Assembly: GCF_016433145.1 (NCBI RefSeq)
Contig: NC_058134.1
Coordinates: 48,404,388-48,468,387 of the forward strand
Length of the DNA stretch: 64,000 bases
Source: Gracilinanus agilis
Lineage: Eukaryota
Direction: 5' to 3'
Part shown: piece after piece, positions 2,695-25,889 of the stretch
How the letters are laid out: every line of letters starts with the position of its first letter
How positions within the stretch are numbered: the first letter of the stretch is position 1
Translations under genes and position numbers: made by a program
The notes under the pieces: generated by a model
What the model was told of the DNA's origin: nothing
The model's database searches: none
Seen by the model: the letters and a program-made list of their open reading frames with translations, nothing else

Positions 2695-3402
2695 GATTTC
2701 TTAATAATAATTACTTGTAAATACATATATTAGAAATACTTACTCCAACTTTTATTTATGACATTTCTAAAGCACTTTCCCACCTCAGACCTCATTCACT
2801 GTTAGCAAGATGTTAGGAATTCCTGTGCTTTCCTACATGAGTCCCCATCCTCTGGGGATCTTAAGAAGGACAGTGGATGGGTCCTCTGGCATGAAGGGAG
2901 GTAATAGTCCCATTGAGTGGAATATGTGTGATCTAAAATCTGGTGGGATTAGAGATGTAATCACAGAAGTAGGAAACAAGGGATCAGGAATCACTGTTGG
3001 AGGACTGATGGGAGGGAGAGTAAAATAACTGGCAGAGGTTCCTGCTTCAGCTATTGAAGGAGGAAGAGCTCTAGGGAGTTCTGGATCTGGCTCCAGCTTA
3101 AGTCCAGAGTCTGAGGTTCCTTCTTTTTCCTTTTCTTTTCCTCTGCCTACCTGCAAACTTGCCCATTTCACATAAAGCTTTGTCCCCTTTACAATGAGTT
3201 TGTTGAAGGACTTCTCAGCAGCCATCTCTGCAGCTTGCTTGGCAGCAAACTGGATGAAAGCCCAGTGTTGCCTCTGTCCAACTATTTATTACCTTTAGGA
3301 TCTCACCGAACTGCTCCAAGTGATTTCTGAGCTCACTTTCACTGATGGCATCTCCCAGGCCGCCCATATAGAGTGTAGTAATGGTCTCATCAGCTGGTGG
3401 GT
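2695..3402 (-). pseudogene. RBM22: RBM22 processed pseudogene, copy 1 (RRM, proline-rich C-terminus and 3' UTR)
   Basis: Minus-strand translation reads [34 protein letters not shown]..(frameshift)..[53 protein letters not shown]..(frameshift)..[12 protein letters not shown]. This matches human RBM22 ([31 protein letters not shown]...[13 protein letters not shown]...GKEKEKDGTTDSGIKLEP...DPQRMGAHAGKH). No introns; frameshifted. Confidence 0.9.
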
Positions 3403-3710: not shown

Positions 3711-3731
3711 ACAGAATAACGTTTATGACCA

Positions 3732-4960
3732 GATTTCTTAATAATAATGATTGGTAAATACATATGTTAGAAATATTTACTCCAACTTTTAGTTATGACA
3801 TTTCTAAAGCACTTTCCCACCTCAGACCTCAATCACTGTTAGCAAGATGTTAGGAATTCCTGTGCTTTCCTACATGAGTCCCCATCCTCTGGGGATCTTA
3901 AGAAGGACAGTGGATGGGTCCTCTAGCATGAAGGGAGGTAATAGTCCCATTGAGTGGAATATGTGTGATCTAAAATCTGGTGGAATTAGAGATGTAATCA
4001 CAGAAGAAGGGAACAGGGAAACAGGACTCACTGTTGGAGGACTAATGGGAGAGAGTGAAGTGGGACACCTGAAAAATGACAAACACTCAGGTTTAGAAGT
4101 TTTAGGGACCTTTAATAACCGCTTGACCAGGGAATCCTCCATAAGTAAGCACAGAACATATATAGGAAAATAAGTTGGCGGAAACTTTCCTTGGTGCGCA
4201 TTCCAAAGGATAGGATTGGTGTGTTCAAAAATATACATTCCTTAAGCAAGCAAGCAAGCACTTTCTCAGAATCAAATGTGGTGCTGTTAGCAACTAGGAA
4301 GGGTCAGGCAAGTGGACAGAAGGGAAGTGAGATGAGAGGTTGGGTGAAAACCCAGCTAGGTTCCCATGAGGGGCCCATAAGGGGCTCTGTTAATTTTTAG
4401 TCTTCTCTGCTCCATTACAGGAGATTAAAATAACTGGCAGAGGTTCCTGCTTCAGCTATTGAAGGAGGAAGAGCTCTAGGGAGTTCTGGATCTGGCGCCA
4501 GCTTCAGTCCAGAGTCTGAGGTTCCTTCTTTTTCCTTTTCTTTTCCTCTGCCTACCTGCAATCTTACCCATTTCACATGAAGCCTTTTCCCCTTTACAAT
4601 GAGTTTGTTGAAGGACTTCTCAGCAGCCATCTGTGCTGCTTGCTTGGCAGCAAACTGGATGAAAGCCCAGTGTTGCCTTTGTCCAATTATATATTACCTT
4701 TAGGATTTCTGATTTCAGTCTCACTGATGGTATCTCCCAGGCCGCCAATATAGAGCCTCATGAGAATTGTCTTATCAGCTGGTGAGTCCAGGGGAAGCAT
4801 TGTTGAAGCCTGGTTTTAGAAGCTTCTCTGCTACAGGATCCTGAATCCCACAATAGGCCATCTCTGATGTTCTGAGCAGCAAGAGGATCTTCAGGGCCTG
4901 GAGGCTTCTCCTGTCTGTATGGACACCTCTCTCCTCTTTATAAGTCTCCTTTCCCCCTTC
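3732..4960 (-). pseudogene. RBM22: RBM22 processed pseudogene, copy 2 (CCCH finger end to 3' UTR), split by a solo LTR
   Basis: Translation reads [91 protein letters not shown]. The 3' part and flank are highly similar to copy 1 (2695-2815 vs 3732-3852). Confidence 0.9.
4056..4419 (-). mobile_element. Solo ERV LTR (364 bp) inserted into RBM22 copy 2
   Basis: Minus strand TGTAA...TTCA with a TATA-like run and ATTAAA. It is flanked by a 4-bp TSD with one mismatch (4052-4055 agag / 4420-4423 ggag). Removing it restores RBM22 sequence colinear with copies 1 and 3. Confidence 0.85.
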
Positions 4961-5994: not shown

Positions 5995-7030
5995 ACTGTT
6001 TAAAAACTATTTATTCCAAGTTTTGTTCCTTACATTTTTAAAGTACTTCATCACCTAAAAGCCCAACCTGGGTAGCAAGTTGTTGGAGATGCCTATCCTT
6101 TCCTAGAGGAGCCCCCATCCTCTGGGGATCTTGAGATGAATAGTGGATGTATCCTGGAGCTGGCATGAAGGGAGGTAGGCGATGGTCCCATTCTGTGAAA
6201 TATGTGTGATTTTAAATCTGCTGGGAGTGAAAGTGCAATCTGAGGAGGAGGGGGCAGGTCAACATGAACCCCTGCTAGAAGACCAGTGGGAGGGAGATTA
6301 AAATAACTGGCAGCTGCTGGAAGAGAAGGAAGAACTCCAGGATTTCCTGGAACCAGCTCCAGCTTAAGTCCTGAGTCTGTGGTTCCTTCACTTTCTTTTC
6401 CTCTGCCCATTTCACTTCAAGTCTTCAATCCTTTACAACAAGTTTGTAAAGGACTTCTCAGCAGCCATCTCTGCAGTTTGCCTGGCAGCAAACTGGATGA
6501 AAACCCAGGGTTGCCTCTGTCCAACTGTGCCTCTGTTACCTTTAGGATCTCAGGAATTGCTCCAAATGATTTTTTAAAACCCTTATCTTCCATCTTGGAA
6601 TCAATACTGTGTATTAGTTCCAAGGCAGAAGAGTGGAAAGGACTAGGCAATGGGTCAATTGACTTGCCCAGGGTCACACAGCCAGGAAGTGTCTCAGACC
6701 AGATTTGAACCTAGGACCTCCCATCTCTAGGCCTGGTTCTCAATTGACTGAACCACTTAGCTGCTCCCTCCAAGTGATTTTTGAGATGAGTTTCACTGAT
6801 GGTATCTCCCAGGCCACCAATATAGAGTGTGGTAATGATCTCTTCAGCTGGTGAGTCCGGAGGAAGCATTGTTGAAGTTCATTTTACAAGCTTCTCTGCC
6901 ACCAGATCCTGAATCCCATAAAAAAGATCTCTGATGTTCTGAGCTGCAAGAGGATCTTTAGGGTCTGGACGCTTCTCATGTCTGTATGGACACTTCTCTT
7001 AAGCAGTCCACAGGAATCCTCTTTTATTTC
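5995..7030 (-). pseudogene. RBM22: RBM22 processed pseudogene, copy 3 (most divergent), split by a SINE
   Basis: Translation reads [54 protein letters not shown]..[SINE]..[42 protein letters not shown]. The 3' UTR has AATAAA near 6010. Weak similarity may extend 5' to about 7090. Confidence 0.88.
6575..6767 (-). mobile_element. SINE1_Mdo-type tRNA-derived SINE inserted in RBM22 copy 3
   Basis: Full SINE body with a 15-bp TSD: ctccaaatgattttt (6560-6574) / ctccaagtgattttt (6768-6782). Confidence 0.9.
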
Positions 7031-7157: not shown

Positions 7158-7760
7158 TCAGAAAANAACTCCAAGGAGAAACTTAAGGACTTTGATTATG
7201 ATATTCATGTCTTCACAATCATCCCCCTTTCCTAAGGATTTTCCCAGTGCCTCTAATTCTTCAATAGTGGTGTTTTCTTCATGGACCTTCAGGTCATTCT
7301 GTGTGGCCTTTTCTCCTGGTTCTTGACCAGCAACCATTTCATTAAGGTACTGTTGATCAATCTTATCCAAAGCTGCCTTCAAGTCATTCCTTAAACCCTT
7401 GTTAACCTCTTGTGTGAGAATCTCTATCTTTCTTAAACGTTGAAATGCCTCATAATCAGTTTCTCCAAACAATCTAACTGGTTGTCCTCTTTCTCTTAAC
7501 TGCCTGATGACCTCATGCCTTGAAAGAGTCACAGGTGATTTTTCCTCTGCCATTTCCAGTTCTAATACTAGATTGGATGAAGGTAATGGTTTCTGATCCT
7601 TCTCTTTTTGCTGTACCTTGTAGCCACATCTTTCAAAGTATGCTTCCTCTTCTTTTTTGGAAAGTTCACTCTGTTTGAAGTATCTTTTATTTTCCCCAAG
7701 CAGCTTCTTGTCCTCCACCAGCTTCCGCTTCCTTGAGATCTCTGCTTTAAGGATATCCAT
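7158..7760 (-). pseudogene. PRPF18: PRPF18 processed copy: N-terminal 198 codons open, 3'-truncated (lacks the C-terminal Prp18 domain)
   Basis: [21 protein letters not shown]...[31 protein letters not shown]...KFLLGV aligns without gaps to human PRPF18 residues 1-198 (roughly 80-85% identity by eye against the remembered sequence). It is intronless. Similarity stops at a single N at 7166, followed by TGA. Confidence 0.93.
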
Positions 7761-8480: not shown

Positions 8481-9240
8481 TGAAACCCCAAGATCTTTCT
8501 CTAACTACTGTTTAGCCAGATCTCCCCCATCTTGATTTTGACTTGTTTTTATAGTTAAAAACAACTTCCTTGAGAAAGAAAACATAGTGCACATAAAAAT
8601 GTGGGGAAAATAACCTTTCCACATAAAGACAGTCATTGGTGTACCAGGAGCCATTATACTCAGTAACATAGTCTAAAATTTTAATTCCAAGGTGACTTTT
8701 CCCCATCTCCAAACCTCTGGCCTTGTCAGAACAGTAAGGCAAGTTCAGGGGTCTAGATTTTGAGTCCCCTTGAATCATGGAGAATTGTTATTTGTGAAGA
8801 AGAATGGCAAAATCCCTTACTTACAAACAATATAGGCAGAGAAAACTGGGACGCTGAAAAAAAGTTCTTATATTCTACTGGCATACTATCTAATAGAACC
8901 CCAAACACAAATGTATTGATATTTGCTGCATCTGACTTAAAAAAAACAAACCTCCCAATATGGCAGAAGTGCTCAGGAGGGACATTGCTGTATCTAAACT
9001 TTCCTCTGAGCTCATGGAAAACTTAATTTCAATGAAATTCACTGGAAGATATTATTAAATATATTAAGGTGGTTGTGATTTGGATCAGCAATGATAAATG
9101 GTACTTCAAAATCATAGAAATACTTTGAAATTCTTTTTTTTTAATAGTGCTTTTAGATCTGATCTTTACTGGTTAGCAAATATTAGAATTAGAATATAGA
9201 AAAGTATATGTCACTCTGTGCTTTCTAAGCTACTTCTAGC

Positions 9241-9606
9241 TGGTAAGGACTTGTTTGAAATTAAGGGAGTGGGGAGCACCTGAGCTAACTTGAAGGCTGT
9301 TATGGCTTGCTTTCTTTGGTTTACAAGGATTTACAAGGCTGAGAGGACATACAAGCACCCAAAACAACTTTAAATGTCCTACAAACAGGCCATGGGAAGG
9401 AACATTATCCAGGGGGCACTGGGGATCTTTGTACTCTTTCTCTGCCCTTTCCCCTGTAATACCCCCTGCAACCTTCATGGGAGGAATAATCTGAGGGAGA
9501 GTGGAGAGTTCCCAGGAGAAGGGCCATATTGCAGGCCCATAATAAATGTAGCAATATGAAATCCTGTTTTGGATTTTCCATCTCCATGGCTACATTATCT
9601 GTTACA
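9241..9606 (+). mobile_element. Probable solo LTR
   Basis: TG...TGTTACA ends, a TATA-like TTTAAA and AATAAA near 9540. It is absent from the paralogous block at 17195-17770. No TSD found. Confidence 0.45.
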
Positions 9607-9744
9607 TCCTTGAATAAACACCTTAAGATGAAGGAGTTTGAGATGCAATTCTTTGGGAAGAATCAGCATTCTTTTTCCCACAACAAAACTCATTCTTCTA
9701 CAACAGTTACATTTATGTTGAGTAGTGAATCAGTAATAGAATTG

Positions 9745-10218
9745 CTTTACTGAAAGCAAAAAAAGACTTCAATAGTTCTTTCTGTGGAGGTAGATAGCAT
9801 TCTTTGTCATATATCCTTCAGAATTGTCTTGGATTATTATATTAATGAGAGTAACCAAGTTTTTCATACTTGATCTTCCCACAATATTGTCCTTACTGTA
9901 TGTGTTGTTCACCAATTTCTGCTTATTTTGTTATATATCAATTTATGTAAATCCATCCTTCCAGCTTTTCCTGAAAATATCCTGCTCAGCATGTCTTAAA
10001 GAACAGCAGCATTCCATTGCCATCATGTACCACAGTTTGTTTAGCCATCTCCCAATTGCCTTCAATTTCTAATTCTTTGCCACCACAAAAGAACTACTAT
10101 AAATATTTTTGTACAAGTCTGTCCTACCCTATGCCCTCTCACACCTTTTTTTAAAATCTCTTTGGGATGCAGAACTAGTAGTGGTATTTCAGAATTAAAT
10201 TTATGTACCGTTTTATAG
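9745..10218 (-). mobile_element. Old L1 ORF2-end/3' UTR fragment
   Basis: ggaggtagatagcattc..., ccacagtttgtttagccatctcccaattg..., typical of the reverse complement of a marsupial L1 3' end. Confidence 0.75.
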
Positions 10219-10569
10219 TGTTAAAGGAAATTCCTTGTTCTCTTTGAGTTAGTAATTGTGAAAGGGAACCCCTTAGTCTCCTTGCCTAGTCAGATGAAGC
10301 AGGGGCAGGCAATCCCTCCTAGACCTAAAATGGATTCCTTGCACACTGCCATCATTTTCCCTTTCTGGGCTCACATCACACCTCTCAAGAAACTAGTGTC
10401 TCTTCCACATTGGTGGAGGAATAATGGACACACTGAGTTGCTTGAAGCCCTGGTATGACACTCACTAACTATCTCTGTCTTTGCCCTATCTCTTTGGCCT
10501 CCCACCTCTCCCTCCTCCCAAGGAGGACTCTTTAGCTCTATTGGAGAACAAAAAGAAGGATGGAAAGAC

Positions 10570-10720
10570 CAGGCAGAGCCAAGATGGCAGACAGGAAACA
10601 GGAAAACTGGAAACCTCCATGAGAAACCACCCCCCACAAAATGGAGATTCATGCCAATTCATCCCACAAAACTAATACTGGACTGAGTGCGAGAACCAAC
10701 AAGGGGATGGAGCTGGGAAA
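10570..10720 (+). mobile_element. L1 5' UTR-like fragment inside the duplicated unit (second copy about 13820-13970)
   Basis: GAGCCAAGATGGCGG start motif and tgccacaaaaccaatactgga...cagaagcaacaaggagatggag resemble remembered marsupial L1 5' UTR sequence. Confidence 0.45.
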
Positions 10721-11127
10721 GGAAATTTCTTTATTGTAACTCAATCAAGTAGTTAGAGAGCTCTACCCTTTGAATTCAATCAGCCAGAAACTCCTGAATC
10801 CTCCCTATGAGAGTTTATCACTACCAAAGGAGGAGAGGTGGATCCCACAGGCACTGTCCCCTGCTTGGGCAGTGCTGGCCAAATTGGGAGACTGCACCTG
10901 GTTCCTGGGAAGAGGGGGAGAGACAGGAAGTGACCTGCACAAAGGGGATGGCAGGCCAAGACCAAGGACACCTTCAGGCCCTCTGCCTGGGTGAGCTGAG
11001 CTAAAGAGAGATTCTGGGAGGCAGTCCACTCTTCCTGGAATCGGCTCTGGAGAGGCTTTCAGGCTGAGGGGCTGGAGCTCTGGGCAGGGTCTGCCCTGGT
11101 GGAACTCTGGCTAAAGACACCACTTGC

Positions 11128-11950
11128 ATGAAGGAATTCTTTGGCCCCTGAGGGTCAGTAGTTGGTGAAAGGGAACCCCTTTCATCTCTTTGCCTAGTCA
11201 GAGCTAAAGCTTAGCTGAACAAGAACTCCAGTAACCCTACTTAGTACCACACTAGGGATGAGAAGAGGGGATGAAGTCTCCTTCTTCTCCCTTTGGATAG
11301 AATCAACACAAGCTGGAGGAGCTCCCAAACCACTTGGTGAGTTCATCCCCTACTTAGTGCTAGGGGAGAAGCCAGCAAGAAACTTGGAGAGTTCCCACCC
11401 CTGCCCCCCTTTCTTGTAACTCAGAGAGTCAGAGACTTGTGAGTTTCCCCCCTGCCCCCACCTCAGCCAGTGCCTGGCCCTTGCCATGAATGAGGACAGC
11501 TGCAGGAAGTGGGGACTGGTTCCCCCCAAACCCCGCCCCCTGGGCGGAGCTAGAGGATTCGGGAAGCCTGATTGGTCCCCTGGAGGAGGGGCGGGAACTG
11601 GAAACCACCATAAAAGCCTTCAAGTCCCTGGGCTGAGCCAGACTGGTGAGGTGGAGTCTCTTGGAGGGTGTCTCCTGGAGAGAGTCTTCAAGAGAACTTC
11701 ACTGGACACTGGCAGGTGAGCCTTGGCTTCACTTTCAGCTGAGATTCTGACCCTTGGCAGACTTCTTTGGGCAGCTGCAAAGGACTGACTCCTTTCCTAG
11801 CTTCCTCAGAGACGAGCTTCCATCTTGGAGGAGGCATCCTAGTTCCTGACTACTAGGGGCCCTCCTGGCTGAGGAGGTAGCTCCAGTAGAGCTATTTTCT
11901 CTAAGCCTTCTCACATTGCTCTGCTCCATTGGTTCCCTTCCACTCTGGGA
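11128..11950 (+). promoter_or_regulatory. LTR-derived promoter and leader upstream of SLC7A6OS copy 1
   Basis: GC box 11531-11540, reverse CCAAT 11571-11575, GC box 11588-11595, CATAAAA 11609-11615, donor CAG|GTGAG at 11716. The stretch 11780-11845 resembles the reverse complement of the LTR at 18650-19000 (aaagactgactc..ttcc..atctgggaggaggc). Confidence 0.65.
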
Positions 11951-12170
11951 CAGAATTCTGACTAGACTAGAGATAGCATACCTTTGGCAAGCAGGATTTT
12001 TTCACCTCATTGAGGTGAGGTCCAACCACTCCATTGAACCTTTGCCCACTGCCTGAGGACTCCCAGGACATCCGGACTGGGGGAAGCCCCTGCCAGGGCC
12101 TGAGCTGGACTTCTGAACCTTTCAGAAACTCAGAAAGGAGGCCAGAGGGAAAGGAGAAGAGGGGCCTGGC

Positions 12171-12536
12171 ATGATGGAGGCCTGTGGGGCCCCAGCAGTG
12201 TTGCGAGTGAGGAGGAAGCGAGGAGAGGAGCCCCCTGAGGCACTCTTTGTCCCCTGTAAAAGGCAGAGGAGGGAGGATGGAGGCGAGGACTGGGGGTCCC
12301 CCCCTTCCCTGCCCCTGGGGGAGAACGTCTTCTTCAAGCTGGCGGCTACAGTGTCCTCCCAGCATGAACCTGTTCCAAAGTATGTCAGGGAAGCTCTTCA
12401 CAGACAGAGAGCCACCAGAGCCCTGAAGCCCTCATGTCAGAGTCATCAGAGAATCCAGCAGCATCTCCTAGCTAGGAAGCAGGGCACCAGGCAGCAAGAG
12501 CGCTACCACCTGCTCTCCACACACCGAGCCCCTCCT

Positions 12537-12576
<40 letters not shown>

Positions 12577-13244
12577 CCCAGCCTCCTCTAGACCCTGCCC
12601 ACACCACTCAGGGGCACCAGCTAGACTCTGGTCTTACCACGCCAAAGTCACAAAGACAGCAAGGAGCCACACTTCCCCAGGCACCCTCTGCACAAGGCTT
12701 CCACTCATTTGACAGCGTTCCTCAGGCCGCCTCTGAACAGGAGAAGCCCTCCGCGCCTGACACCTGCTCTCACGACTCTGACCCAGATGTCATCCTCTCT
12801 CATGCTGTCAAGCTCATGCGGGAGCACCTAGCCATCTCCAAGGAAGCCAAAGGAAGGCAGCATCGGGAAAGAGAGCAAGATTATGTCTATGACATTTACT
12901 ACCTGCACGCACCTCCCCCAGGACCCACTGAGAGCATCCCCTCTGTGCACAGCTACGGCCACGACTGGGAACTGATAGCCCCTGACCAGCAAGAACAGGA
13001 CATCTATGCTGAGGACCAGGAGGAAGAGGAGGATGAAAACAGTGAGAATCACTGGGGCAACCAGTACCCTGAGGAGCAAGAACCAAGCACGGACACAGAC
13101 AGCTCCAGGGCCTCTGATGAACAATATGGCAGCCTCAGTGATGAGGACAGGACTCTCATCACACCAAGGACATGCAACAAATATGCTGACCATGTGCTAA
13201 AGGAGTTTGACTATGACTGCTCCCAGGACTTTGATTCTGACTAA
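12171..13244 (+). CDS. SLC7A6OS: Intronless SLC7A6OS (Iwr1-like RNA polymerase II nuclear import factor) retrocopy 1, intact 357-aa ORF
   Basis: AVLRVRRKRGEEPPEAL, NVFFKLAATVSSQ, SDPDVIL, DYVYDIYY, EDENSENHWGNQYPEE and KEFDYDCSQDFDSD* match human SLC7A6OS from start to stop. No introns, stops or frameshifts. Confidence 0.9.
12537..12576 (+). repeat. (GCACAG)6 coding repeat giving an (AQ)6 tract (second copy 15786-15825)
   Basis: Direct reading of the sequence; in frame within the SLC7A6OS ORF. Confidence 0.95.
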
Positions 13245-14376
13245 GGACTACACAAACATTCACCCGGTCCCCAGCATCAGCCCCCGAGGTGCTCCTCTTT
13301 CAAAGCTCCCAACATGGCCCCCTTCACCTGCTGCCTCCCCTCTGGGACACCTGCACTTCTCCACCATGCTTCAACAAGCACCTCCGTAGAAGAATCTCAT
13401 TGCCACTCAACATCCCCTCGGCCCCATCATTCCACATCATCACTTGCCTCTCATTCCAGGCTGGAGCCAACTCACCCCACTGAGCTACAAGGGGTCTCAG
13501 GAGACATTTCCTTCAGACGATCCATTTCACAGCTTCAGAAAGGATGAGGCAGGGGCAGCCAATCACTCCTACACCTAAAATGGATTCCTTGCACACTGCC
13601 ATCATTTTCCCTTTCTGGGCTCACATCACAACTCTCAAGAAAATAGTGTCTCTTCCACATTGCTGGGGGAAGAATGCACACACTGAGTTGCTCCAAGCCC
13701 TGCTGGGACTCTCACTAACTAACTCTGTCTTTGCCCTATCTCTTTGGCCTCCCACCTCTCCCTCCTCCCAAGGAGGACTCTTTAGCTCTATTGGAGAACA
13801 AAAAGAAGGATGGAGAGACCAGGCAGAGCCAAGATGGCGGACAGGAAATAGCAAAACTGGAAACCTCCATGAGAAAGCACCCCCACAAATTGGAGATTCA
13901 TGCCAATTCATGCCACAAAACCAATACTGGACTGAGTGCCAGAAGCAACAAGGAGATGGAGGCGGGAAAGGAAATGTCTTTGTTTTAACTCCATCAAGTA
14001 GTTAGACAGCTCTACCCTTTGAACTCAATCAGCCAGAAACTCCTGAATCCTGGCGATGAGAGTTTATCACTACCAAAGGAGGAGAGGTGGATCCCACAAG
14101 CACTGTCCCCTGCTTGGGCAGTGCTGGCCAAATGGGGAGACTGCACCTGGTTCCTGGGAAGAGGGGGAGAGACAGGAAGTGACCTGCACAAAGGGGATGG
14201 CAGGCCAAGACCAAGGACACCTTCAGGCCCTCTGCCTGGGTGAGCTGAGCTAAAGAGAGATTCTGGGAGGCAGTCCACTCTTCCTGGAATCGGCTCTGGA
14301 GAGGCTTTCAGGCTGAGGGGCTGGAGCTCTGGGCAGGGTCTGCCCTGGTGGAACTCTGGCTAAAGACACCACTTGC

Positions 14377-15199
14377 ATGAAGGAATTCTTTGGCCCCTGA
14401 GGGTCAGTAGTTGGTGAAAGGGAACCCCTTTCATCTCTTTGCCTAGTCAGAGCTAAAGCTTAGCTGAACAAGAACTCCAGTAACCCTACTTAGTACCACA
14501 CTAGGGATGAGAAGAGGGGATGAAGTCTCCTTCTTCTCCCTTTGGATAGAATCAACACAAGCTGGAGGAGCTCCCAAACCACTTGGTGAGTTCATCCCCT
14601 ACTTAGTGCTAGGGGAGAAGCCAGCAAGAAACTTGGAGAGTTCCCACCCCTGCCCCCCTTTCTTGTAACTCAGAGAGTCAGAGACTTGTGAGTTTCCCCC
14701 CTGCCCCCACCTCAGCCAGTGCCTGGCCCTTGCCATGAATGAGGACAGCTGCAGGAAGTGGGGACTGGTTCCCCCCAAACCCCGCCCCCTGGGCGGAGCT
14801 AGAGGATTCGGGAAGCCTGATTGGTCCCCTGGAGGAGGGGCGGGAACTGGAAACCACCATAAAAGCCTTCAAGTCCCTGGGCTGAGCCAGACTGGTGAGG
14901 TGGAGTCTCTTGGAGGGTGTCTCCTGGAGAGAGTCTTCAAGAGAACTTCACTGGACACTGGCAGGTGAGCCTTGGCTTCACTTTCAGCTGAGATTCTGAC
15001 CCTTGGCAGACTTCTTTGGGCAGCTGCAAAGGACTGACTCCTTTCCTAGCTTCCTCAGAGACGAGCTTCCATCTTGGAGGAGGCATCCTAGTTCCTGACT
15101 ACTAGGGGCCCTCCTGGCTGAGGAGGTAGCTCCAGTAGAGCTATTTTCTCTAAGCCTTCTCACATTGCTCTGCTCCATTGGTTCCCTTCCACTCTGGGA
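14377..15199 (+). promoter_or_regulatory. LTR-derived promoter and leader upstream of SLC7A6OS copy 2
   Basis: Appears identical to 11128-11950 (+3249); donor GT at 14965-14966. Confidence 0.65.
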
Positions 15200-15419
15200 C
15201 AGAATTCTGACTAGACTAGAGATAGCATACCTTTGGCAAGCAGGATTTTTTCACCTCATTGAGGTGAGGTCCAACCACTCCATTGAACCTTTGCCCACTG
15301 CCTGAGGACTCCCAGGACATCCGGACTGGGGGAAGCCCCTGCCAGGGCCTGAGCTGGACTTCTGAACCTTTCAGAAACTCAGAAAGGAGGCCAGAGGGAA
15401 AGGAGAAGAGGGGCCTGGC

Positions 15420-15785
15420 ATGATGGAGGCCTGTGGGGCCCCAGCAGTGTTGCGAGTGAGGAGGAAGCGAGGAGAGGAGCCCCCTGAGGCACTCTTTGTC
15501 CCCTGTAAAAGGCAGAGGAGGGAGGATGGAGGCGAGGACTGGGGGTCCCCCCCTTCCCTGCCCCTGGGGGAGAACGTCTTCTTCAAGCTGGCGGCTACAG
15601 TGTCCTCCCAGCATGAACCTGTTCCAAAGTATGTCAGGGAAGCTCTTCACAGACAGAGAGCCACCAGAGCCCTGAAGCCCTCATGTCAGAGTCATCAGAG
15701 AATCCAGCAGCATCTCCTAGCTAGGAAGCAGGGCACCAGGCAGCAAGAGCGCTACCACCTGCTCTCCACACACCGAGCCCCTCCT

Positions 15786-15825
<40 letters not shown>

Positions 15826-16493
15826 CCCAGCCTCCTCTAGACCCTGCCCACACCACTCAGGGGCACCAGCTAGACTCTGGTCTTACCACGCCAAAGTCAC
15901 AAAGACAGCAAGGAGCCACACTTCCCCAGGCACCCTCTGCACAAGGCTTCCACTCATTTGACAGCGTTCCTCAGGCCGCCTCTGAACAGGAGAAGCCCTC
16001 CGCGCCTGACACCTGCTCTCACGACTCTGACCCAGATGTCATCCTCTCTCATGCTGTCAAGCTCATGCGGGAGCACCTAGCCATCTCCAAGGAAGCCAAA
16101 GGAAGGCAGCATCGGGAAAGAGAGCAAGATTATGTCTATGACATTTACTACCTGCACGCACCTCCCCCAGGACCCACTGAGAGCATCCCCTCTGTGCACA
16201 GCTACGGCCACGACTGGGAACTGATAGCCCCTGACCAGCAAGAACAGGACATCTATGCTGAGGACCAGGAGGAAGAGGAGGATGAAAACAGTGAGAATCA
16301 CTGGGGCAACCAGTACCCTGAGGAGCAAGAACCAAGCACGGACACAGACAGCTCCAGGGCCTCTGATGAACAATATGGCAGCCTCAGTGATGAGGACAGG
16401 ACTCTCATCACACCAAGGACATGCAACAAATATGCTGACCATGTGCTAAAGGAGTTTGACTATGACTGCTCCCAGGACTTTGATTCTGACTAA
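15420..16493 (+). CDS. SLC7A6OS: Intronless SLC7A6OS retrocopy 2, intact 357-aa ORF, protein identical to copy 1
   Basis: Same translation as 12171-13244 in the ORF track. Confidence 0.9.
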
Positions 16494-17394
16494 GGACTAC
16501 ACAAACATTCACCCGGTCCCCAGCATCAGCCCCCGAGGTGCTCCTCTTTCAAAGCTCCCAACATGGCCCCCTTCACCTGCTGCCTCACCTCTGGGACACC
16601 TGCACTTCTCCACCATGCTTCAACAAGCACCTCCGTAGAAGAATCTCATTGCCACTCAACATCCCCTCAGCCCCATCATTCCACATCATCACTTGCCTCT
16701 CATTCCAGGCTGGAGCCAACTCACCCCACTGAGCTACAAGGGATCTCAGGAGACATTTCATTCAGACCCTTCATTTCACGGCTTCAGAAAGGATGAGGCA
16801 GGGGCAGCCAATCACTGCTATCTTATCACGCCTCTGAAGAAAGTATTGTCTCTTCTACATTGGTGGAGGAAGAATTTACACACTTAGTTGCTTGAAGCCC
16901 TTGTATGACTGTTACTAACTAACTCTATCTTTGCCCAATCTCTTGGGCCTCCCACCTCTCCCTCCTCCCAAGGAGTTGAAGCTTGTATTGATTCAATCAA
17001 AAGGTAGAAATAGGAGAGTTAATCCTGTCTTCACAACCTAGTCAGGTAAGTAAGTTACTGTTAACCAAAGTGTTAGCTCCAACAAGGTAAAGAGAATAAA
17101 GGATTCCCTTTCTGACTCAAAATATAACAAATATTGGTGACCACATAATTTCATAAAATCATTATCCAACTGTTAAATTTTACTCTTACAGTGCATATCT
17201 GACTTAAAATAGAAATCTCCTACTATGGCACAAGTGCTTAGGAGAGAGAGAGAGACACTCTTGTATCTAAACTTTTCCTCTGAGTTTGTGGGAAATTTAA
17301 TTTCAATGAAATTCACTGGAGGTGAGTATTAGATATATTCAGATGGTTGCACTGATCTTCAATAATAGGCCAGTAACAGAATAGGTTTTCCTAA

Positions 17395-17770
17395 AAGCAA
17401 GAAAAGACTTCAACAGTTCTTCCTCTGGAGGTAGATAGCATTCTTTGTCATAACTTCTTCAGCTTTGTCCCAGATCATTGTAGTTGTGTGAGTAGCTAAG
17501 TCTTTCATAGATCATTCCACAGTCTCTGTTATTGTATACAATGTTTTCCTGGTTCTGCTTATTTCACTCCGTATCAGTTTACATATATCTTTCCAGCTTT
17601 TTCTGAAATCATCCTGCTCATCATTTCTTATATCACAACAGTATTTCATCTCCATCATATTCTACAGTTTATTCAGCCATTCCCCAATTAATGGATATGT
17701 ACTCAATTTCCAATGCTTTGCCCCCAGAAAAAGAATTACTGTAAATATTTTTGTCCACATATGTCCTTGG
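17395..17770 (-). mobile_element. Old L1 3' fragment, paralogous to 9745-10130
   Basis: Same L1 segment and same non-L1 junction as at about 9730-9760. Confidence 0.7.
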
Positions 17771-18649
17771 GGCAGTCTGATGTTTGAAATCACTTAGCTT
17801 CTAAATGGAGCCAAAGGGCAGGACATTGCCTTGCCATTCACAATTTAACACCTGGTATAATGGACCAAATTGTGAAGGAACTCAAAGCCAAATATCATTT
17901 TTTTTGTTCAAAACAATTTTAAAAAATAAGCTTAAATTCCATTTAATACTTCTTCCAACTATAAGGAGATATTGTATTACTTCTTCAGATTCAGGGAATC
18001 TACCAGCATTTGCAGGATTTTTAAAAGTATCAGATGATCAAAGATGAGGCTTTTCTCCTTTGTTTGAGAGAAGACCAACCTCCTTTCTGTACTCAAAGGC
18101 TGGGATATTTTTCTCCCACTAGTGCCCAATGCTGCCTTGCCTGCTTTTAGAAAAATCTACCCCAGGTTTCTTCCTCAAGCTCTCATTCTCCCTGCCTTTT
18201 CTCACTGCTGTGCCACTTTATCTGCTCAGAAGGCAGGCTCCCTGGCTTGGGAAAGATGGAGTCTGTGGACATCTAGGGTTGGAGGAAAGGGGTTCCACAG
18301 GTATTATCTGGCTTCTGAGAGGAACAATCTCCAACTCAAAAGAACATTGAACTCAGAGTTAATGTAGCAAAGACTCTTTCATTTCATTCTCCTGGAAATC
18401 GGTACTTGGGAGCCAGTTTTACAGGTGTTACAACTGGCAGACAAGTACAAGAAATGGGAACAGGTTCAGGCTCCCTTTTATTAATGCCAAGCAGTCCCTC
18501 CTCACCATTGGCTGGTTCCCAAGAGTAATGAGCTCATCACAAGAGCCAGGTGTTTGGAATGCAATTTAGATTCCCAATCATTCACATTTGAGTAAAGTAA
18601 CTTCACTTGTTAGCCTCTTAAAAGAGGCTAATATAAAGGGGGGAAGTAA

Positions 18650-19000
18650 TGTAAGGGGTTAAAATTGAAGGGTGGGACTAAATTATTTAAGAGTATGGCT
18701 GCCATTAAATACTCCATTCCAAAATGATTTTTATGGTCATTTATTTACAAAAGGAGAAAGAGTGAAAGTATAGAAATGGGAAAGAGGGCAGAGTAGGAGA
18801 CCTAGCTTAACAAAGCTAGACTATGTGCTCAAGCCCTGGCTTCCTCTGGCAGCTATGAGGCCTCCTCCCAGATGAGGGGCCCCTCTGGAGGCTAGTATCT
18901 CCAGGAAAGGCCAAGGAAGCGAGTCAGTCTTTTTCACTCACCCACGTGGTAGTTCCTCCTCTTGTCTTGCTGACCTGATGTAGGGAAAAGGAGCTTAAGC
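18650..19000 (-). mobile_element. ERV LTR fragment (R/U5 part)
   Basis: Minus strand gtgggtgagtgaaaaagactgactc...AATAAA...; architecture typical of opossum ERV LTRs. Boundaries approximate. Confidence 0.6.
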
Positions 19001-19752
19001 TAGAAACATGAAACTGAACTCAATTTTCTTTTCTTTTCTTCTTCCATTATGGACTTAGGAGAGGAGTCCACCATCTTGCACAACCTGTTCCTCACATGCT
19101 CCAAAGTTACTAAGCTTTGATCAAACACCTTCTAAAGGAAAGCAACTGTGCTGAGCCTACTAATGGACACAGGCTTCTGTGGGTGAAGCAGGAAAGTGGG
19201 CAACAGTAGCTGAGATATAGAAGAAAGTAGTGAAGGTAGCTTGGCCATGGACTGAGGGAAGTAGTCATAGACACTAAGTAGTGGCAACTTTGTTTTATGA
19301 AAACCCCAAGTTTGCCTTTGTTCCAAGAAACTTGCCTTAAGGGAAATCCCAGACTGACCTTGTCTTAGACTGAGCAATAAACCTCAAAGTACCCAATGAT
19401 CTCGGCTTAGCTAGAATGAGTAGATAAAATCAAATCTTAAATACCCTTTTGTCTTAGAAGTTTCTCTTATTGGTAGAAATGCAAAAGGAAAACATATGAT
19501 TCATCACTTTTTTATATGAGTATATTATTTGGGATATTGGTTTTAAAAGATGACTGTATTACAAAAATGAATAATATGGAAATAGGTATTGAGTGATAAT
19601 ACATGTATAACCCAGTAGAATTGCTTGTCAGCTCCAGTAGGAGGGAGGGAAAAAAGGAGGGAGAGAACAAGAATCCTGTAATCATGGAAAAATACTTAAA
19701 AATGAATCAATAGATAATAATTTTTGAAAAGGACTTGAAAAAAATCTTCCAT

Positions 19753-20078
19753 TGTATCAGAGGCCTCTCCTGGGTAGTCCAGCCCTTGGCTGGAATTCTC
19801 CTTCCCTTGTCTCCATTGTAAAGCTAATCAAATGAACCTTCCTGTCCTATATTCCCCAAAAGACATATAAGACCCCAAGTTCCTCAGCTCACTGGAACAT
19901 CCCCTTTGGAGCTGCTTTTTCCCAGAGACAATGTTCCCCTTGTCCTATAGCTTTGTCTTGGTGTGGTATCTAGTGATTGACTCTATATAGGACCAATTAG
20001 AGTGTTGCTTTAACTTGTCCTGATTAAAGACTTGTGCTTTTTAACTGCTTTTGTGGTTCTGTGTTTTCAATGTTGACA
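19753..20078 (+). mobile_element. Probable solo LTR
   Basis: TGT...GACA ends, TATAA at about 19866, ATTAAA at about 20024; no TSD recognised. Confidence 0.5.
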
Positions 20079-20096
20079 TTAGAAAAAGATAAACTG

Positions 20097-20300
20097 GGCG
20101 GGACACCATGGTGGCTCAGTGGATTAAGAGCCAGACATGGAGACAGAAGGTCCTGATTTCAAATTTGGGCTCAGATTCTTCCTAGTTGTGTGACCCTGGG
20201 CAAGTCACTTAACTCCAAATGTCTAGCCCTTTCTGCTCTTCTGCCTTGGAATTAGTATTAAGTCTAAAAAAGAAAGTAAAGGTTATAAAAAAAAAAAAAA
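20097..20300 (+). mobile_element. SINE1_Mdo-type SINE
   Basis: tRNA-like head, gtgtgaccctgggcaagtcacttaac core and A tail. Confidence 0.8.
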
Positions 20301-21221
20301 GACTCTCTTCTGTATCTGTGTTGCTATTACTCACCTCCACAGGCTCCTAGCTGCTTCCAAGAGCAACTTAATAAGTAAATCAATTTGACTATACTTTTTC
20401 TATAGAGAAGAAAATAGAAAAAGGAATGTGAATTGGATGTACTAAAGGTAGCCTATGTGAGTGACCATTATGTCAACTGTGAATTTTCTTTGCATGTGAT
20501 ATAAATTCAAGAGCAATACACACTATACACAAATATAACTTAAGTGGAGACAGAAATGTTTGAACTAGTCTATCTAACTATTCATCCATCTATCTATACA
20601 ATTGTATGTGTGTATATGTACTTAAATGTGTTTATGCATGCAAATAGAGGGAAGGGAATGTTTTCTGTTTTGGGGGCCACACTGATAAGATGAAGAGTAT
20701 CTTGAGAGGGCTCCCCTCTTTCCTTATTTGAGTTGCTTTTCTGTCCCTTTACAATTTTATTTTATAATTTATTTATTGCAATTTATTAATTATTACTTTC
20801 CTAATTCTTCTTGGTTTAACAACAATGATAATAAGTATTAATAAGTAAATCAAATTGGTGTATGAAGTAGATAGATGGCACAGTGGATAGAGTGTCAGGA
20901 AGACCCGAGTTCCTATCTAGATTCAGACACTTATTAGCTCCCTGACCTTGGGCAATTCACTTAATCAGATTTGCCTCAGTTTTCTCATCTGTAAAAGGAC
21001 GAGGAGGAGGAAATAGCCAACCTGATACAAACAGGATGAGAGATAGAAATGACTGAAAACAGAAAAGACAGAAAATTGAAAAGTCAAAATGATTGAATAA
21101 TAAAGATGAGTTATTATTTTCCTTATTATTTGTTGTTTTGTTGCCCACCTGCCCAAGGGCAGCCAGGTTGTATCTCAGCTGTTTCTCAAACCCTAATCCT
21201 TTGCAAAAATAAACAACAAGT

Positions 21222-21400
21222 GGGGGCAGCTGGGTAGCTCAGTGGATTGAGAGTCAGGCCTAGAGACGGGAGGTCCTAGGTTCAAATCCCAGCTGTGTGA
21301 CCCTGGGCAAGTCATTGCCTACCCTTACCACTCTTCCACCTATAAGTCAATACACAGAAGTTAAGGGTTTAAAATTAAAAAAATAAATAAATAAATAAAC
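21222..21400 (+). mobile_element. Young SINE1_Mdo-type SINE with internal deletions
   Basis: gggggcagctgggtagctcagtggattgagag head, (AAAT)n tail, TSD aaacaacaag at 21211-21220 and 21401-21410. Confidence 0.9.
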
Positions 21401-21734
21401 AAACAACAAGAGCACTCTTTCTGCTATCTCAGGACAGAGAAAGAACTCTTTGCTTTTCTGGCTAGAGGACTGGAATAACCATCACAAAAAGACCTGCTTT
21501 GGATTTCCTCAGCTGATAGACCCTTCACTGGATGATAGAAGAGGCTGCATAGGAGCTGGACACCACAAGGAGGCAGCAGTAGCTCAGCTGAGATTCCTAA
21601 CAGAAAGTAAATGGGGAGAAGGAAGAGCCCTTTGCTCAGAAGAGGGCAACTCAACAGCTTAATCTTCTTTAAGAAGTTCTTTGTCGTTGTCCTTACTTTT
21701 TTAATTCTATTTTTTAATTAAAAAATTTTTTTAC

Positions 21735-21905
21735 TCCTCACCTTCTGTGTTAGAATCAATACTACGTATCAGTTTTAAGGCAGAAGAGCAGGAAAGGCTG
21801 GGCAAGTGGATTAAGTGACTTGCTCAGGGGTCTCCCAGCTAGGAGATGTCTGATGGCAGATTTGAACTCAGGACCTCCTATCTCTGAGTCATCTAGCTGC
21901 CCCAA
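21735..21905 (-). mobile_element. SINE1-type SINE
   Basis: Reverse-complement SINE body ending ...ctagctgcccc. Confidence 0.75.
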
Positions 21906-22559
21906 GTCCCCATTAATCTTGGGTTCCCTCTGAGATCCTTTCCACATGTTTCTGTTTTCATCCTCTTTGTACATCATTTGTTTACTTGTTGTCTCTCATC
22001 AGACTGAGCTCCGTTTATATCTCAGGCACTTAGCACAGGACTAGAGGCTGTTATTAAATGCTAATTAATTTCACTTGTCTTAGCCAATAAGAGAAAAAAC
22101 AGCATTAGGTCTGTGGAATCTTCAGCTGAAGGTTTAGCTAAGCTCCTTAATTTGCTATGTCACTTTAGGAAAATCAGGTAACCTTGTTAGAGTTGAGGTT
22201 CCTCCTCTGTAAAATGGACACAACAATGCTTGCATTACCTGCCTCATGAAGTCATTGTAAGAATCAAATAAGACTGGGCATTTGTAGTCTTAGCAAATTC
22301 AGAATTACTAAATCTGTAAATATCTTGTCCTTCTCGGTGATACATGCCTCCTCTTTAATTATTTCAGCTTCAGAATTCTCTTGGAGCTGGTGATCTTTTC
22401 CTCCAAAAAACTGTTGTGCCAATCACCTCTAGATAGGTGGGTACACTTAACTCAGAAATTCTCAAATCCCCAAAGTATCCATTAAACATCTATCTCTCAG
22501 ATTCACTATTTGTGACCTAAGCCCTTAAGGGAAGGAAACACAAAATAGAGGTAGCCTGG

Positions 22560-23370
22560 GATTTGAAGTCTAGTCTCAGGTTTACCTAGGCACCAAATGT
22601 TATAGCATCCAAATTCTTGAAAGAAAAGCTAAAGGAGTTACAGGTAGAGATAGAGAGGAAAACTTTAATAAAAGTGGGAGATTTTAAACTTTTCTCCTCA
22701 GAACTGGACAAATCTAACTAAAAAATAAGAAAGTCATGGAGATAAAATAAGTCTTAGATAAGCTAAATATAGTAGATATCTGGAGAGAACTGAATTAGAA
22801 TAGAAAGATATATACCTTTTTTCAGTGGCCCTTGATACCTTTACAAAAACTGACTATCTTAAGATATAAAAACTTTATAGTTAAATTCAGAAAAGCAGAA
22901 ATATTGAATGCATCCTTTTCAGATCATAATGCAATAAAATTATATATAATAAAAGATCCCAGAAGCAGAATAAAAATTAGACTAAATAACTTAATCTTTA
23001 AAAAATCAATGGGTTAAAGAAAATAATATTAAGACAATATACCAAAACCAATGGGATACAACAAAAGAAGTAATTAAAGGAAAATCAATATCTCTAAATT
23101 CCTATAACAATAAAATAAAGAAAGAACAAATCAACGAACTGGGTATGCAATTCCCAAAAAAAGAAGAAAAAAAACACAGAAAAAAGCATCAGGACAACCA
23201 AATGGATTTACAAGTAAATTTTTACCAAACATTTAAAGATAATCTAATTCCAATGTTAAATAAATTATTTAGAGTAATTGGTAAAGAAGGGATCCTGCCA
23301 AACTCCTTTTAAGAAACAAATGTGTTGCTGATACATAAAGCAGGAAGAGAAAAAACAGAGAAAGAAGATT
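22560..23370 (+). mobile_element. L1 ORF2 fragments (endonuclease and downstream region)
   Basis: Translation KAEILNASFSDHNAIKL (L1 endonuclease SDH motif); further remnants such as ggaccaaatggatttaca and gggatcctgccaaactccttt. Confidence 0.8.
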
Positions 23371-25889
23371 ATAGGCAAGTATAGTTTTACAGCCTCCAAA
23401 GCTGCTGAGGGCATACTCTTCCTCCCAAAAAAGTCCTAAGAGAGCATCCCAAACCAGGCAGATTTCCCCAAAAGATGTAAACAGAGCATTTCAAACTCAT
23501 AGTAAGGGGTGGTGACTCTTCTTATCTTTGGCATCTCCCTCTATTGAATGGGGTCCAGTAAGGGATTGCTTCATCATTCTCAAGTTATCCTCAGAGATCA
23601 GTCCCCATGTCTGCTGGCAAAATGGCCAGGTTTGAATCAATGCTTTTATTAGTGACTATCCTCTCCAACACAGAAGCTTCCTTTGTAGTCAGAAAATTCT
23701 ACTTTGATGAAAACCAAAGCCTTTCCACCTCTTGAACTCAAAAGGTATCTTCTTATTCTGGATATGTCCAGAATAAAATCCTAAAATCTGGAGAGAAAAA
23801 AAAAACAATGAAGGAGTCTCAAGCCAGGCTCGGGTTTGCCCAGGAGGAGGACATGTAGTCTAGATGCTATGTACTTTATGGCAGCATGAAGAAGGAGGGT
23901 GAGACATAGTGTCACTTAAACTGTTCCTGTGTGACTTATAGACTAAAAGGAAGAATGAAACAGAGGGTAGAGTAGCTCCCTTTTGTATATCTATTGAGAA
24001 ATCAGTTATTTTGGCTCTACTGTCAATAAGGGGACACCATCATTTCAAAAAGCCAAGTCCTTTACCCTGGAGTCATACATGAATGGAAGTGGCCACATGT
24101 TTGACCAGAACTCTCAGCATGGTCCATAGGAAGGCCCCTATAGTTCAATACAATGCAAATTCCTAAAAGAAAGCAATTGTTTTCATTTTTGTCTTTATTT
24201 CCTCAGCACATAGCATAGTGCTATGCATCTAAATAACTATTTGTTGAATTGTATTGTCTGTCCCTTCTTTTTTTAAATACTCACAAACCATATCTAAGTA
24301 ATGCATTCAAGAATTTTGTTAGGAATTAAAATCAAGCTCATGGTTTAAAGAATTTACCTTCTTTACCTTTTAGAACAAAAAGATATTTGTCTTTAGTCTA
24401 TGATATTTCTCCCATTTAACCTGACTATTTAAATGTCAAAATCAGCAACTTAGCAATCATTAAAACAAGTTTTCCAGTACCCCAGGCAGCCCATTCAAAT
24501 AGGGTGACTTGAAAGCATTGAGGCCAGGTGGGCGGGCACCATCTCCTCACTTATCTTTAGTTTTAATTCCTCATGAACCATTTTTGTTTTTGTCCACCTA
24601 ACCAGCTAGCAGAATAATGGATAAAGTACCATGCCCAGAGTCAAGGAGACCTTTGTTCAAATCCAGCCTCAGTCACTTATTAGCTGTGTGACTCTGGACA
24701 AGTCACTTATCCAGTCTGCCTCAGTTTCCTCAATTGTAAAATAGAGATAATAACGTAAGATTAATGTGATAGTATTTGTAAGGTGCTTAGCACAGTGCCT
24801 GTCACATAGTAGGCACTATATAAATGTTTATTTGCTTCCCTTCTTTTCTAACCTGAAATTCATTCTCATTAATAGAGTTTTTGAAATTCGAGTAAGAGTT
24901 GAGTAGTTCTTCCTTTTGTTTATTTGTAATTGTGTTCTCTCTCATCCTCTCTCTTTTTCTCTGATTGGTATCAGTTCACTCTTCTTGCTTTTATTCTCAG
25001 TCTGTGTATTCTTCAATATCTGAGGTGAGTGCTGATCTCCCATTGATTTCTTTCAAAAATCCTCCCTAGTCTTCCTCAATAGAATTATAAAGCAACATGT
25101 CTCAGTTTACTTGTGCCTAATAAAGTGAATTTGCAGATAAAATCTACTTTTAGCTAAACTAGCCTTCACAAAGTGGCAAGGGGCTTCAAAAGATCCCTGC
25201 AAAGAAACCACAGATTAAAGATAAAACTAATAGTGTGAGCACATGCAAACAAGAAAATGTTTGTATCACTGCCACTGTCTCTTTCTTCTAAGAGCTCAAA
25301 ACCCCAGTGATTTAATCATATTTGACAAGACGTTGGCTCCCCAAACTCAAGGTTATCAAGATTATTTGAAATACATATTTATATCCACTCTCATTTGATG
25401 ATGGTGAAGGAAATGGCAAACCACTCCAATATCTTTGCCAAGAAAACCCCAAATGGGGTCACAAAGAGTCGGACATGATTGAAATGACTGAAAAATCATT
25501 TGATGAGCTTCACACTAAGTACATACTGTGCCTTGACATATTCTTTTATGAGAGGATCAAACCACCATAATTTTTAAAAGACATTAAAAAGCTAAACCTT
25601 TGTTCTGTATTGCCTATAAAAAAAACAACCCCTTTCATTTCTGTATACTTTAGAAACTTGGAAACAGAATTTTCCAGCCAAATTTCAAATCTTCCCAATG
25701 AAGAGTTTCAGTGCAGGTCGAAACCATAAAATTAATAAATAAATAAACCACATTTCAATACCTTCTAACTAATTTGCAAGAATAATTTATTGATACCAGG
25801 GAAAATGGAAATATCTATCCTTTTCATAACTGATGGATGGGATTGAAAAAAAAAAATGAGTACTGCGATTTAGTAAAGTTCAATACTTC

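Follow-up and report, generated by a model that had tools for sequence, protein, structure and literature searches.

The 64-kb window of the Gracilinanus agilis genome analyzed here (assembly GCA_016433145.1; all positions are window coordinates) carries two tandem, intronless copies of SLC7A6OS. SLC7A6OS/Iwr1 is a single-copy housekeeping factor for bringing RNA polymerase II (Pol II) into the nucleus. We consider it rather likely that the window copies belong to a constrained didelphid retrogene family, encoding a putative Pol II import adaptor, marked by G-to-C biased substitution, and present in tandem through an old duplication. In this account, an SLC7A6OS mRNA would have been retroposed in the didelphid lineage beside CCR8, away from the PRMT7-SLC7A6OS-SLC7A6 locus, and the retrocopy would have grown into a small family, with two tandem units here and one or more diverged copies in other parts of the assembly. 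Selection would have preserved the deeply conserved positions and a strand-specific G-to-C bias would have rewritten the remaining protein. The product has an altered GWIESILSVQPY motif, which is otherwise deeply conserved, and Q, H, or P in place of many acidic residues. Transcription would probably start from a CpG-poor TATA/GC-box promoter ∼530 nucleotides (nt) upstream and proceed through an ATG-free leader, and the identity of the cores of the two anciently duplicated units would come from later gene conversion or from an assembly error.

The two open reading frames (ORFs) lie on the + strand at 12171-13244 and 15420-16493. The ORF listing gives both a length of 1074 nt, 357 codons plus a stop, and the same translation, and a script comparison showed that all 1074 nt match base for base. 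An initial sequence-only reading of this DNA had reported two intact 1074-nt ORFs with identical translations, which is confirmed and holds at the nucleotide level as well. A tblastn search of the 64-kb window found no further SLC7A6OS copy. The parent gene is present in the same genome: Gracilinanus SLC7A6OS (P0002) spans 8374 bp for 341 amino acids on a 725-Mb scaffold with PRMT7 and SLC7A6 on either side, and Monodelphis domestica SLC7A6OS (P0003) spans 8009 bp for 339 amino acids with PRMT7-like and SLC7A6-like neighbors. The multi-exon structure of both was read from gene span versus protein length. The window copies, by comparison, sit on a 313-Mb scaffold ∼12 kb from CCR8, PRMT7 and SLC7A6 are not among the neighbors in the window, and the coding sequence runs through 1074 contiguous nt. 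An uninterrupted coding sequence at a locus other than that of its multi-exon parent argues for retroposition, and on these grounds we regard the copies as mRNA-derived retrogenes. The suggestion of intronless SLC7A6OS/Iwr1 copies with a multi-exon parent elsewhere is thus supported, with the parent now placed at the PRMT7-SLC7A6 locus, and so is the marked divergence with frame-preserving indels that had been noted (61% identity to the parent, every indel in frame).

A published survey (PMC4772013) covers lineage-specific retrogenes of mammals that acquired a new promoter and 5′ leader. Like those genes, the present pair lacks introns, derives from a multi-exon housekeeping gene, sits at a new locus, and combines an intact ORF with a novel noncoding leader; it differs in its tandem arrangement with an identical core, its extreme G-to-C replacements, and the lack of a poly(A) tract or target-site duplication. 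SLC7A6OS was not reported as a retrogene source in the literature that we searched. The retrogene is a further example of a well-known kind; its substitution spectrum and its identical-core tandem are what is unusual.

A further relative is found in the same assembly. P0001, a Gracilinanus entry named "SLC7A6OS, partial", comprises 233 amino acids at 89% identity to the window protein and is encoded by 699 contiguous nt that run to the end of an unplaced 2,066-bp contig, with 1363 bp on the 5′ side of the start codon. The identity between the window protein and P0001 (89.3%, or 10.7% amino acid difference) is close to that between the Gracilinanus and Monodelphis parents (89.8%). We rejected P0001 as a cross-species orthologue because it and the window belong to the same Gracilinanus assembly, and we read it as a third, diverged, partial copy within one genome. 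The earlier count of two copies is therefore correct for the window, but the total exceeds two.

A maximum-likelihood tree with sauropsid and amphibian sequences as the root groups the retro sequences (window and P0001) with support of 100/100, and this clade falls inside a didelphid clade with the Gracilinanus and Monodelphis parents (99/96). Since the retro clade lies within didelphids, its origin would postdate the split from Australian marsupials. Approximately unbiased (AU) tests of retroposition before or after the Gracilinanus/Monodelphis split rejected neither order (p = 0.34 and 0.18), and the retrogene shares none of six derived states of the Gracilinanus parent, but five of these six positions have been overwritten. 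The sequences thus place the retroposition in the American-opossum (didelphid) lineage, and no finer. The retro stem branch is long, at 0.66 changes/site; terminal branches, whether they lead to parents or to retro copies, measure 0.025-0.066.

The encoded protein retains the layout of the family. Pfam Iwr1 (PF08574) matches residues 236-302 with E = 7.7e-8 (33.7 bits against a cutoff of 22), covering profile positions 1-73 of 74. A homology search of 5.8 billion proteins returned SLC7A6OS only, and the full-length matches are marsupial, with 51-59% identity by BLAST and 52-61% when aligned; the match to Gracilinanus SLC7A6OS has E = 2e-119 and 100% coverage and is collinear over the full length. 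A putative nuclear localization signal (NLS) of the bipartite type is kept in family-invariant columns, with RRKR at residues 14-17 and KRQRR at residues 30-34 separated by a 12-residue spacer, as is a central hydrophobic stretch at residues 204-223 that resembles a nuclear export signal (NES). The DYVYDIYY core and the acidic C-terminal tail (VLKEF-YD...DFDSD) are kept as well. An NLS, NES, and Pol II-binding layout has been described for yeast Iwr1 and vertebrate Slc7a6os (PMC4372478), and the retained NLS, NES-like stretch, Iwr1 domain, and acidic tail lead us to view the product as most likely a variant Pol II adaptor, predicted to bind assembled Pol II and shuttle it into the nucleus. With yeast Iwr1 it shares the Pfam domain and the NLS...NES...Pol II-binding layout (PMC4372478), but the two are very distant in sequence, and Pol II binding and shuttling are predictions for the retrogene. 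A sequence search of the PDB found no solved structure matching the window protein.

Set against P0002 and P0003, the retrogene product shares the Iwr1 domain, the bipartite NLS, the hydrophobic stretch, the DYVYDIYY core, and the C-terminal tail; the retrogene differs in being intronless, in its CCR8-linked locus, in its 61% identity, in a Q/H/P-rich composition, in an (AQ)6 repeat, and in a CpG-poor promoter-like region. The (AQ)6 repeat is encoded by a (GCACAG)x6 hexamer array at 12537-12572 (+) that is absent from the parents and shorter in P0001. Relative to the Monodelphis parent, the counts of Q (13 to 36), H (8 to 18), and P (17 to 32) go up, and that of D+E goes down (78 to 59). The retrogene protein is altered at 23 otherwise invariant positions, among them W252, I253, and L257, so that the conserved hydrophobic motif at residues 251-262 is without its W, I, and L, and the invariant GWIESILSVQPY motif reads GPTESIPSVHSY. 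A constrained, multicopy, remodeled SLC7A6OS paralogue would serve as a natural experiment showing which parts the adaptor cannot do without.

The substitutions that produced this protein have an unusual spectrum. We deduced base changes in the ORF from the amino acid replacements, and only where both didelphid parents agree. This gave 70 unambiguous single-base changes (15 transitions and 55 transversions), among which 28 are G-to-C on the coding strand versus 3 C-to-G, and 43 of the 70 are toward C. Per opportunity, G-to-C changes occurred at 26 of 135 diagnostic G positions, compared with 3 of 89 for C-to-G and 1 of 132 for G-to-A, and the G-to-C replacements are spread across E, D, A, V, G, and C codons. 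When orthologues are compared with each other, G/C-type replacements make up 5-16% and transitions ∼60%, whereas in parent-retro comparisons the values are 35-38% and ∼30-35%; pooled, G/C-type replacements are 28 of 80 (35%) between parent and retro sequences versus 15 of 190 (8%) among orthologues (p = 1.9e-7). Selection for loss of acidic charge is insufficient as the sole cause because the excess survives removal of the E/Q and D/H pairs (13/65 versus 7/182, p = 1.7e-4). At four-fold sites the ORF has 59 C and 22 G, compared with 63 C and 42 G for CCR8 in the same window, and the GC skew is −0.43 in the 3′ flank and +0.02 in the leader. Among 50 differences between the flanks of the tandem units, transitions and transversions number 17 and 33, and 17 of the 50 are G/C swaps; of the 11 derived changes in the 151 bp open to polarization, ∼8 are in the middle copy, at the unit junction.

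This spectrum bears on what the intact frame can tell us. In simulations of ORF survival under an ordinary spectrum, the frame stays free of stops with a probability of 0.017 when K = 0.1 and of 2.5e-4 when K = 0.2, but changes to C cannot create stop codons, which makes an open frame weak evidence here. The G-to-C bias thus advises caution: that such a copy has an open frame is not itself evidence of selection. The description of the retrogene as fast-evolving accordingly stands as far as the strong divergence is concerned, but the open ORF that accompanied it counts for little on its own as a sign of function.

The evidence for constraint comes instead from where the changes fall. One comparison used columns with the same residue in 14 marsupial and sauropsid orthologues. 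The didelphid parental state has changed in 20% of these columns versus 45% of the columns that vary among marsupials (p = 1.9e-4), and the depletion is seen within residue classes, both for ancestral E/D (28% versus 67%) and for residues without a diagnostic G (16% versus 36%). Between the window protein and P0001, differences occur at 0 of 71 deeply invariant columns and at 20 of 128 others (p = 1.1e-4), a pattern that shows the copies to have been constrained after they separated. Every length difference relative to the parents keeps the frame, though these differences are in sequence prone to slippage. Purifying selection at the deeply conserved positions is shown statistically by these comparisons.

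The two copies might instead be a processed pseudogene array with no function, whose frame is open since to-C mutations make no stops and whose indels reflect triplet or hexamer slippage. The predominance of changes toward C (43/70) is as this explanation would have it, and the insertions do lie in repeat-like sequence (the AQ hexamer, an acidic run, and TTC TTC). It also draws on the promoter-like region without a CpG island, on the copies being without protein-coding annotation, and on the adjacent PRPF18 and RBM22 retrocopies, which are truncated relics. However, the two site-pattern tests are not explained by residue composition, even the G-to-C changes are scarcer at acidic positions that are invariant (10% versus 37-45%), which needs site-by-site selection, and the ATG-free leader described below is left unexplained. 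We judge the pseudogene explanation to be unlikely.

Several observations nevertheless weigh against a constrained retrogene family. With the inferred C-directed spectrum, the ORF stays open in ∼12% of neutral simulations (P(no stop) ∼0.12), and, site patterns ignored, the divergence between P0001 and the window protein (10.7% at the amino acid level) is about that expected from 5% neutral nucleotide divergence. The replacements W252P, I253T, and L257P remove residues that are invariant from turtles to marsupials. Protein searches did not find an orthologue of the retrogene in another species. The exact window protein is missing from a 15-billion-sequence collection and from the matches of the 5.8-billion-protein homology search, and this absence from public collections indicates that both window copies are unannotated as proteins. 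Finally, neither a poly(A) remnant nor a clean target-site duplication is visible, and there is no A run of ≥7 and no AATAAA from the stop codon to the next unit; loss of both hallmarks is expected in an old copy and is compatible with retroposition.

With purifying selection in place, the depletion of G-to-C changes at invariant positions also informs the origin of the bias: it implies that the changes were filtered singly, which favors a lasting bias over a burst at the birth of the retrogene. A single episode of hypermutation at retroposition is accordingly disfavored, both by this depletion and by the G/C-rich differences in noncoding parts of the units. A regional mutational bias is disfavored by the PRPF18 retrocopy 5 kb away, which has an ordinary spectrum. 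Candidates for the spectrum include C insertion opposite a damaged template, damage to G on the nontranscribed strand, repair-associated mutagenesis in a recombining array, and selection for a Q/H/P-rich composition. We put forward only tentatively, and with more doubt than conviction, that a persistent strand-specific mutational process turned about one-fifth of the coding-strand G into C; candidate causes would be REV1-type C insertion opposite abasic or damaged bases, or nontranscribed-strand G damage at a locus transcribed in the germline. Since no stop codon contains C, a G-to-C process can diverge a protein quickly without nonsense codons. If true, this would be an unrecognized route by which a young gene copy explores sequence space with its frame staying open, and the bias is in any case a lead to a strand-specific germline mutational process.

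Self-BLAST places the ORFs in a tandem repeat with a 3249-bp unit, in which 10293-13571 aligns with 13543-16820 at 98.4% identity over 3279 bp. Unit 1 (10293-13542, +) runs in the order segment A, upstream region, promoter-like region, leader, ORF, and 3′ flank, and unit 2 (13543-16792, +) is overall 98.4% identical to it. The differences are distributed very unevenly. There are 41 in 10293-10885 (∼7%), none across a 2452-bp core at 10886-13337 (+) compared with 14135-16586, and 9 in 13338-13571 (∼4%); the identical core comprises 1285 bp upstream, the ORF, and 93 bp downstream. The segment spanning the unit junction (13338-14134, +) is correspondingly ∼7% diverged from 10293-10885 and ∼4% from 16587-16820. 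Downstream of unit 2, a partial, older, degraded third copy of the unit start is present at 16793-16975 (+), with 85-89% identity and a 48-bp gap. A recent duplication would leave the flanks identical, and the diverged flanks therefore point to an old one, as does the degraded third unit start. The sequence-only reading had called the pair recently duplicated, and this is not borne out: flanks diverged by 4-7% surround an identical 2452-bp core. The identical core reflects either recent gene conversion or an assembly error, not recent duplication.

An abrupt change from 4-7% divergence to no differences in 2452 bp is a signature of gene conversion, and conversion of 2-3 kb tracts is common in tandem duplicates, but an assembly error would look alike. 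The two units could really be ∼5% diverged throughout, with one core used twice in the assembly and the true second core left behind as the unplaced P0001 contig. The left end of that contig maps to ∼10808, ∼78 bp from the start of the identical block at 10886, and the 10.7% amino acid difference between P0001 and the window is about what the 4-7% flank divergence predicts. Other signs are that the unplaced 8.2-kb contigs with a 98%-identical partial CCR8 indicate a region that is incompletely resolved, and that N runs of irregular length (1, 143, and 161) suggest a scaffolded draft whose gaps were estimated. On the other hand, the P0001 contig ends on the right at ∼12874, not at 13337 where the identical block ends, and copies 5% apart are usually easily separated in assembly. 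We give the assembly error a substantial chance, though one short of even. The locus in this respect illustrates how a draft assembly can make paralogues look identical. The diverged flanks and the third partial unit make it unlikely that one single copy was falsely duplicated.

Directly 5′ of the start codon is a leader of 678 nt at 11493-12170 (+; 14742-15419 for copy 2) that contains no ATG. Dinucleotide-preserving shuffles give an expectation of 5.0 ATG with P(0) = 0.0014, and the leader is the longest ATG-free + strand stretch in the 64-kb window. These features fit a translated mRNA with a long leader and bear on the question of selection as well. Within its first part, promoter-like motifs span 11531-11616 (+; 14780-14865 for copy 2), with GC boxes at 11531, 11542, and 11588, an inverted CCAAT at 11570, and a TATA-like ATAAAAG at 11610. 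The CpG observed/expected ratio (o/e) of this region is 0.15, and it is not a CpG island. A CpG-poor promoter-like region would suit a tissue-restricted promoter over a housekeeping one. The retrogene is a candidate tissue-specific Pol II import factor; the expression and germline role proposed in the sequence-only reading are predictions. The 3′ flank (13245-13542, +) is C-rich and G-poor, has a CpG o/e of 0.27, and terminates at the unit junction with the purine run AGAAAGGA. No canonical polyadenylation signal is present between copies 1 and 2, and the first AATAAA is at 17095. Around the array (9000-24000), the CpG o/e of noncoding DNA is 0.02-0.09; the ORF and 3′ flank keep 0.22-0.27.

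The structure of the unit raises a further explanation, in which the 2.3-kb gene block is the interior of a long terminal repeat (LTR)-type retroelement with a captured cDNA, the array reads LTR-internal-LTR-internal-LTR, and repeated reverse transcription accounts for both the long stem branch and the odd spectrum. The units do begin with TG straight after the purine run (AGAAAGGA followed by TGAGG), and the promoter-like part has a TATA, CCAAT, and GC-box layout. A 68-bp repeat X at 10229-10294 (+), 79% identical to 11135-11202 and 14384-14451, moreover adjoins segment A directly at 10293, like a site lacking the block, whereas in both full units the 2.3-kb gene-bearing block intervenes. This junction may correspond to a unit without the gene block, be it an empty site or a deletion, though the resemblance is at only 79% identity. 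Against a retroelement, there is no primer-binding site, the putative LTR holds no polyadenylation signal and does not recur in the 64 kb, and the sequence upstream of the PRPF18 retrocopy has nothing in common with the putative LTR block. We hold this explanation to be quite improbable. The whole array is flanked by two 74%-identical stretches in the same orientation, at 9731-10125 and 17371-17767 (+), which by eye we take to be like the 3′ part of LINE-1 ORF2.

An Rfam scan of the window returned nothing. CCR8 occupies 28725-29768 (−) as an intact single exon encoding 348 amino acids (7tm_1, E = 5e-65) and is publicly annotated, its exact protein being encoded by one contig only, of GCA_016433145.1. 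A partial CCR8 with 98% identity is also present on two unplaced 8,221-bp contigs of this assembly and is either a haplotig or a recent duplicate. A public gene model with a 326-amino-acid protein-kinase product extends over ∼18.7-39.8 kb (+), spanning the CCR8 area on the strand of the retrogenes, and a motif search found no kinase exon.

Relics of two genes of the RNA machinery, PRPF18 and RBM22, are on the opposite strand less than 10 kb from the SLC7A6OS pair. Fragments of an RBM22 retrocopy are found at 2836-3225 (−), and related copies occupy 3731-4706 and 6000-6572, the local duplicates sharing 95% and 75% identity; a 130-amino-acid ORF matches residues 283-395 of human RBM22 in spliceosome structures (E = 3e-31). 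The truncated PRPF18 retrocopy at 7161-7760 (−) contains a 200-amino-acid ORF in which Pfam recognizes a PRP4 domain (E = 8e-13). Its identity to vertebrate PRPF18 is 81-83% across the first 198 of the 342 residues, a single N occurs at 7166, and its replacement spectrum is ordinary. At many positions, two Monodelphis proteins, P0148 ("PRPF18") and P0149 ("PRPF18-like"), are farther than the window retrocopy from the aligned eutherian and turtle PRPF18, and they may themselves be diverged copies and not the ancestral gene.

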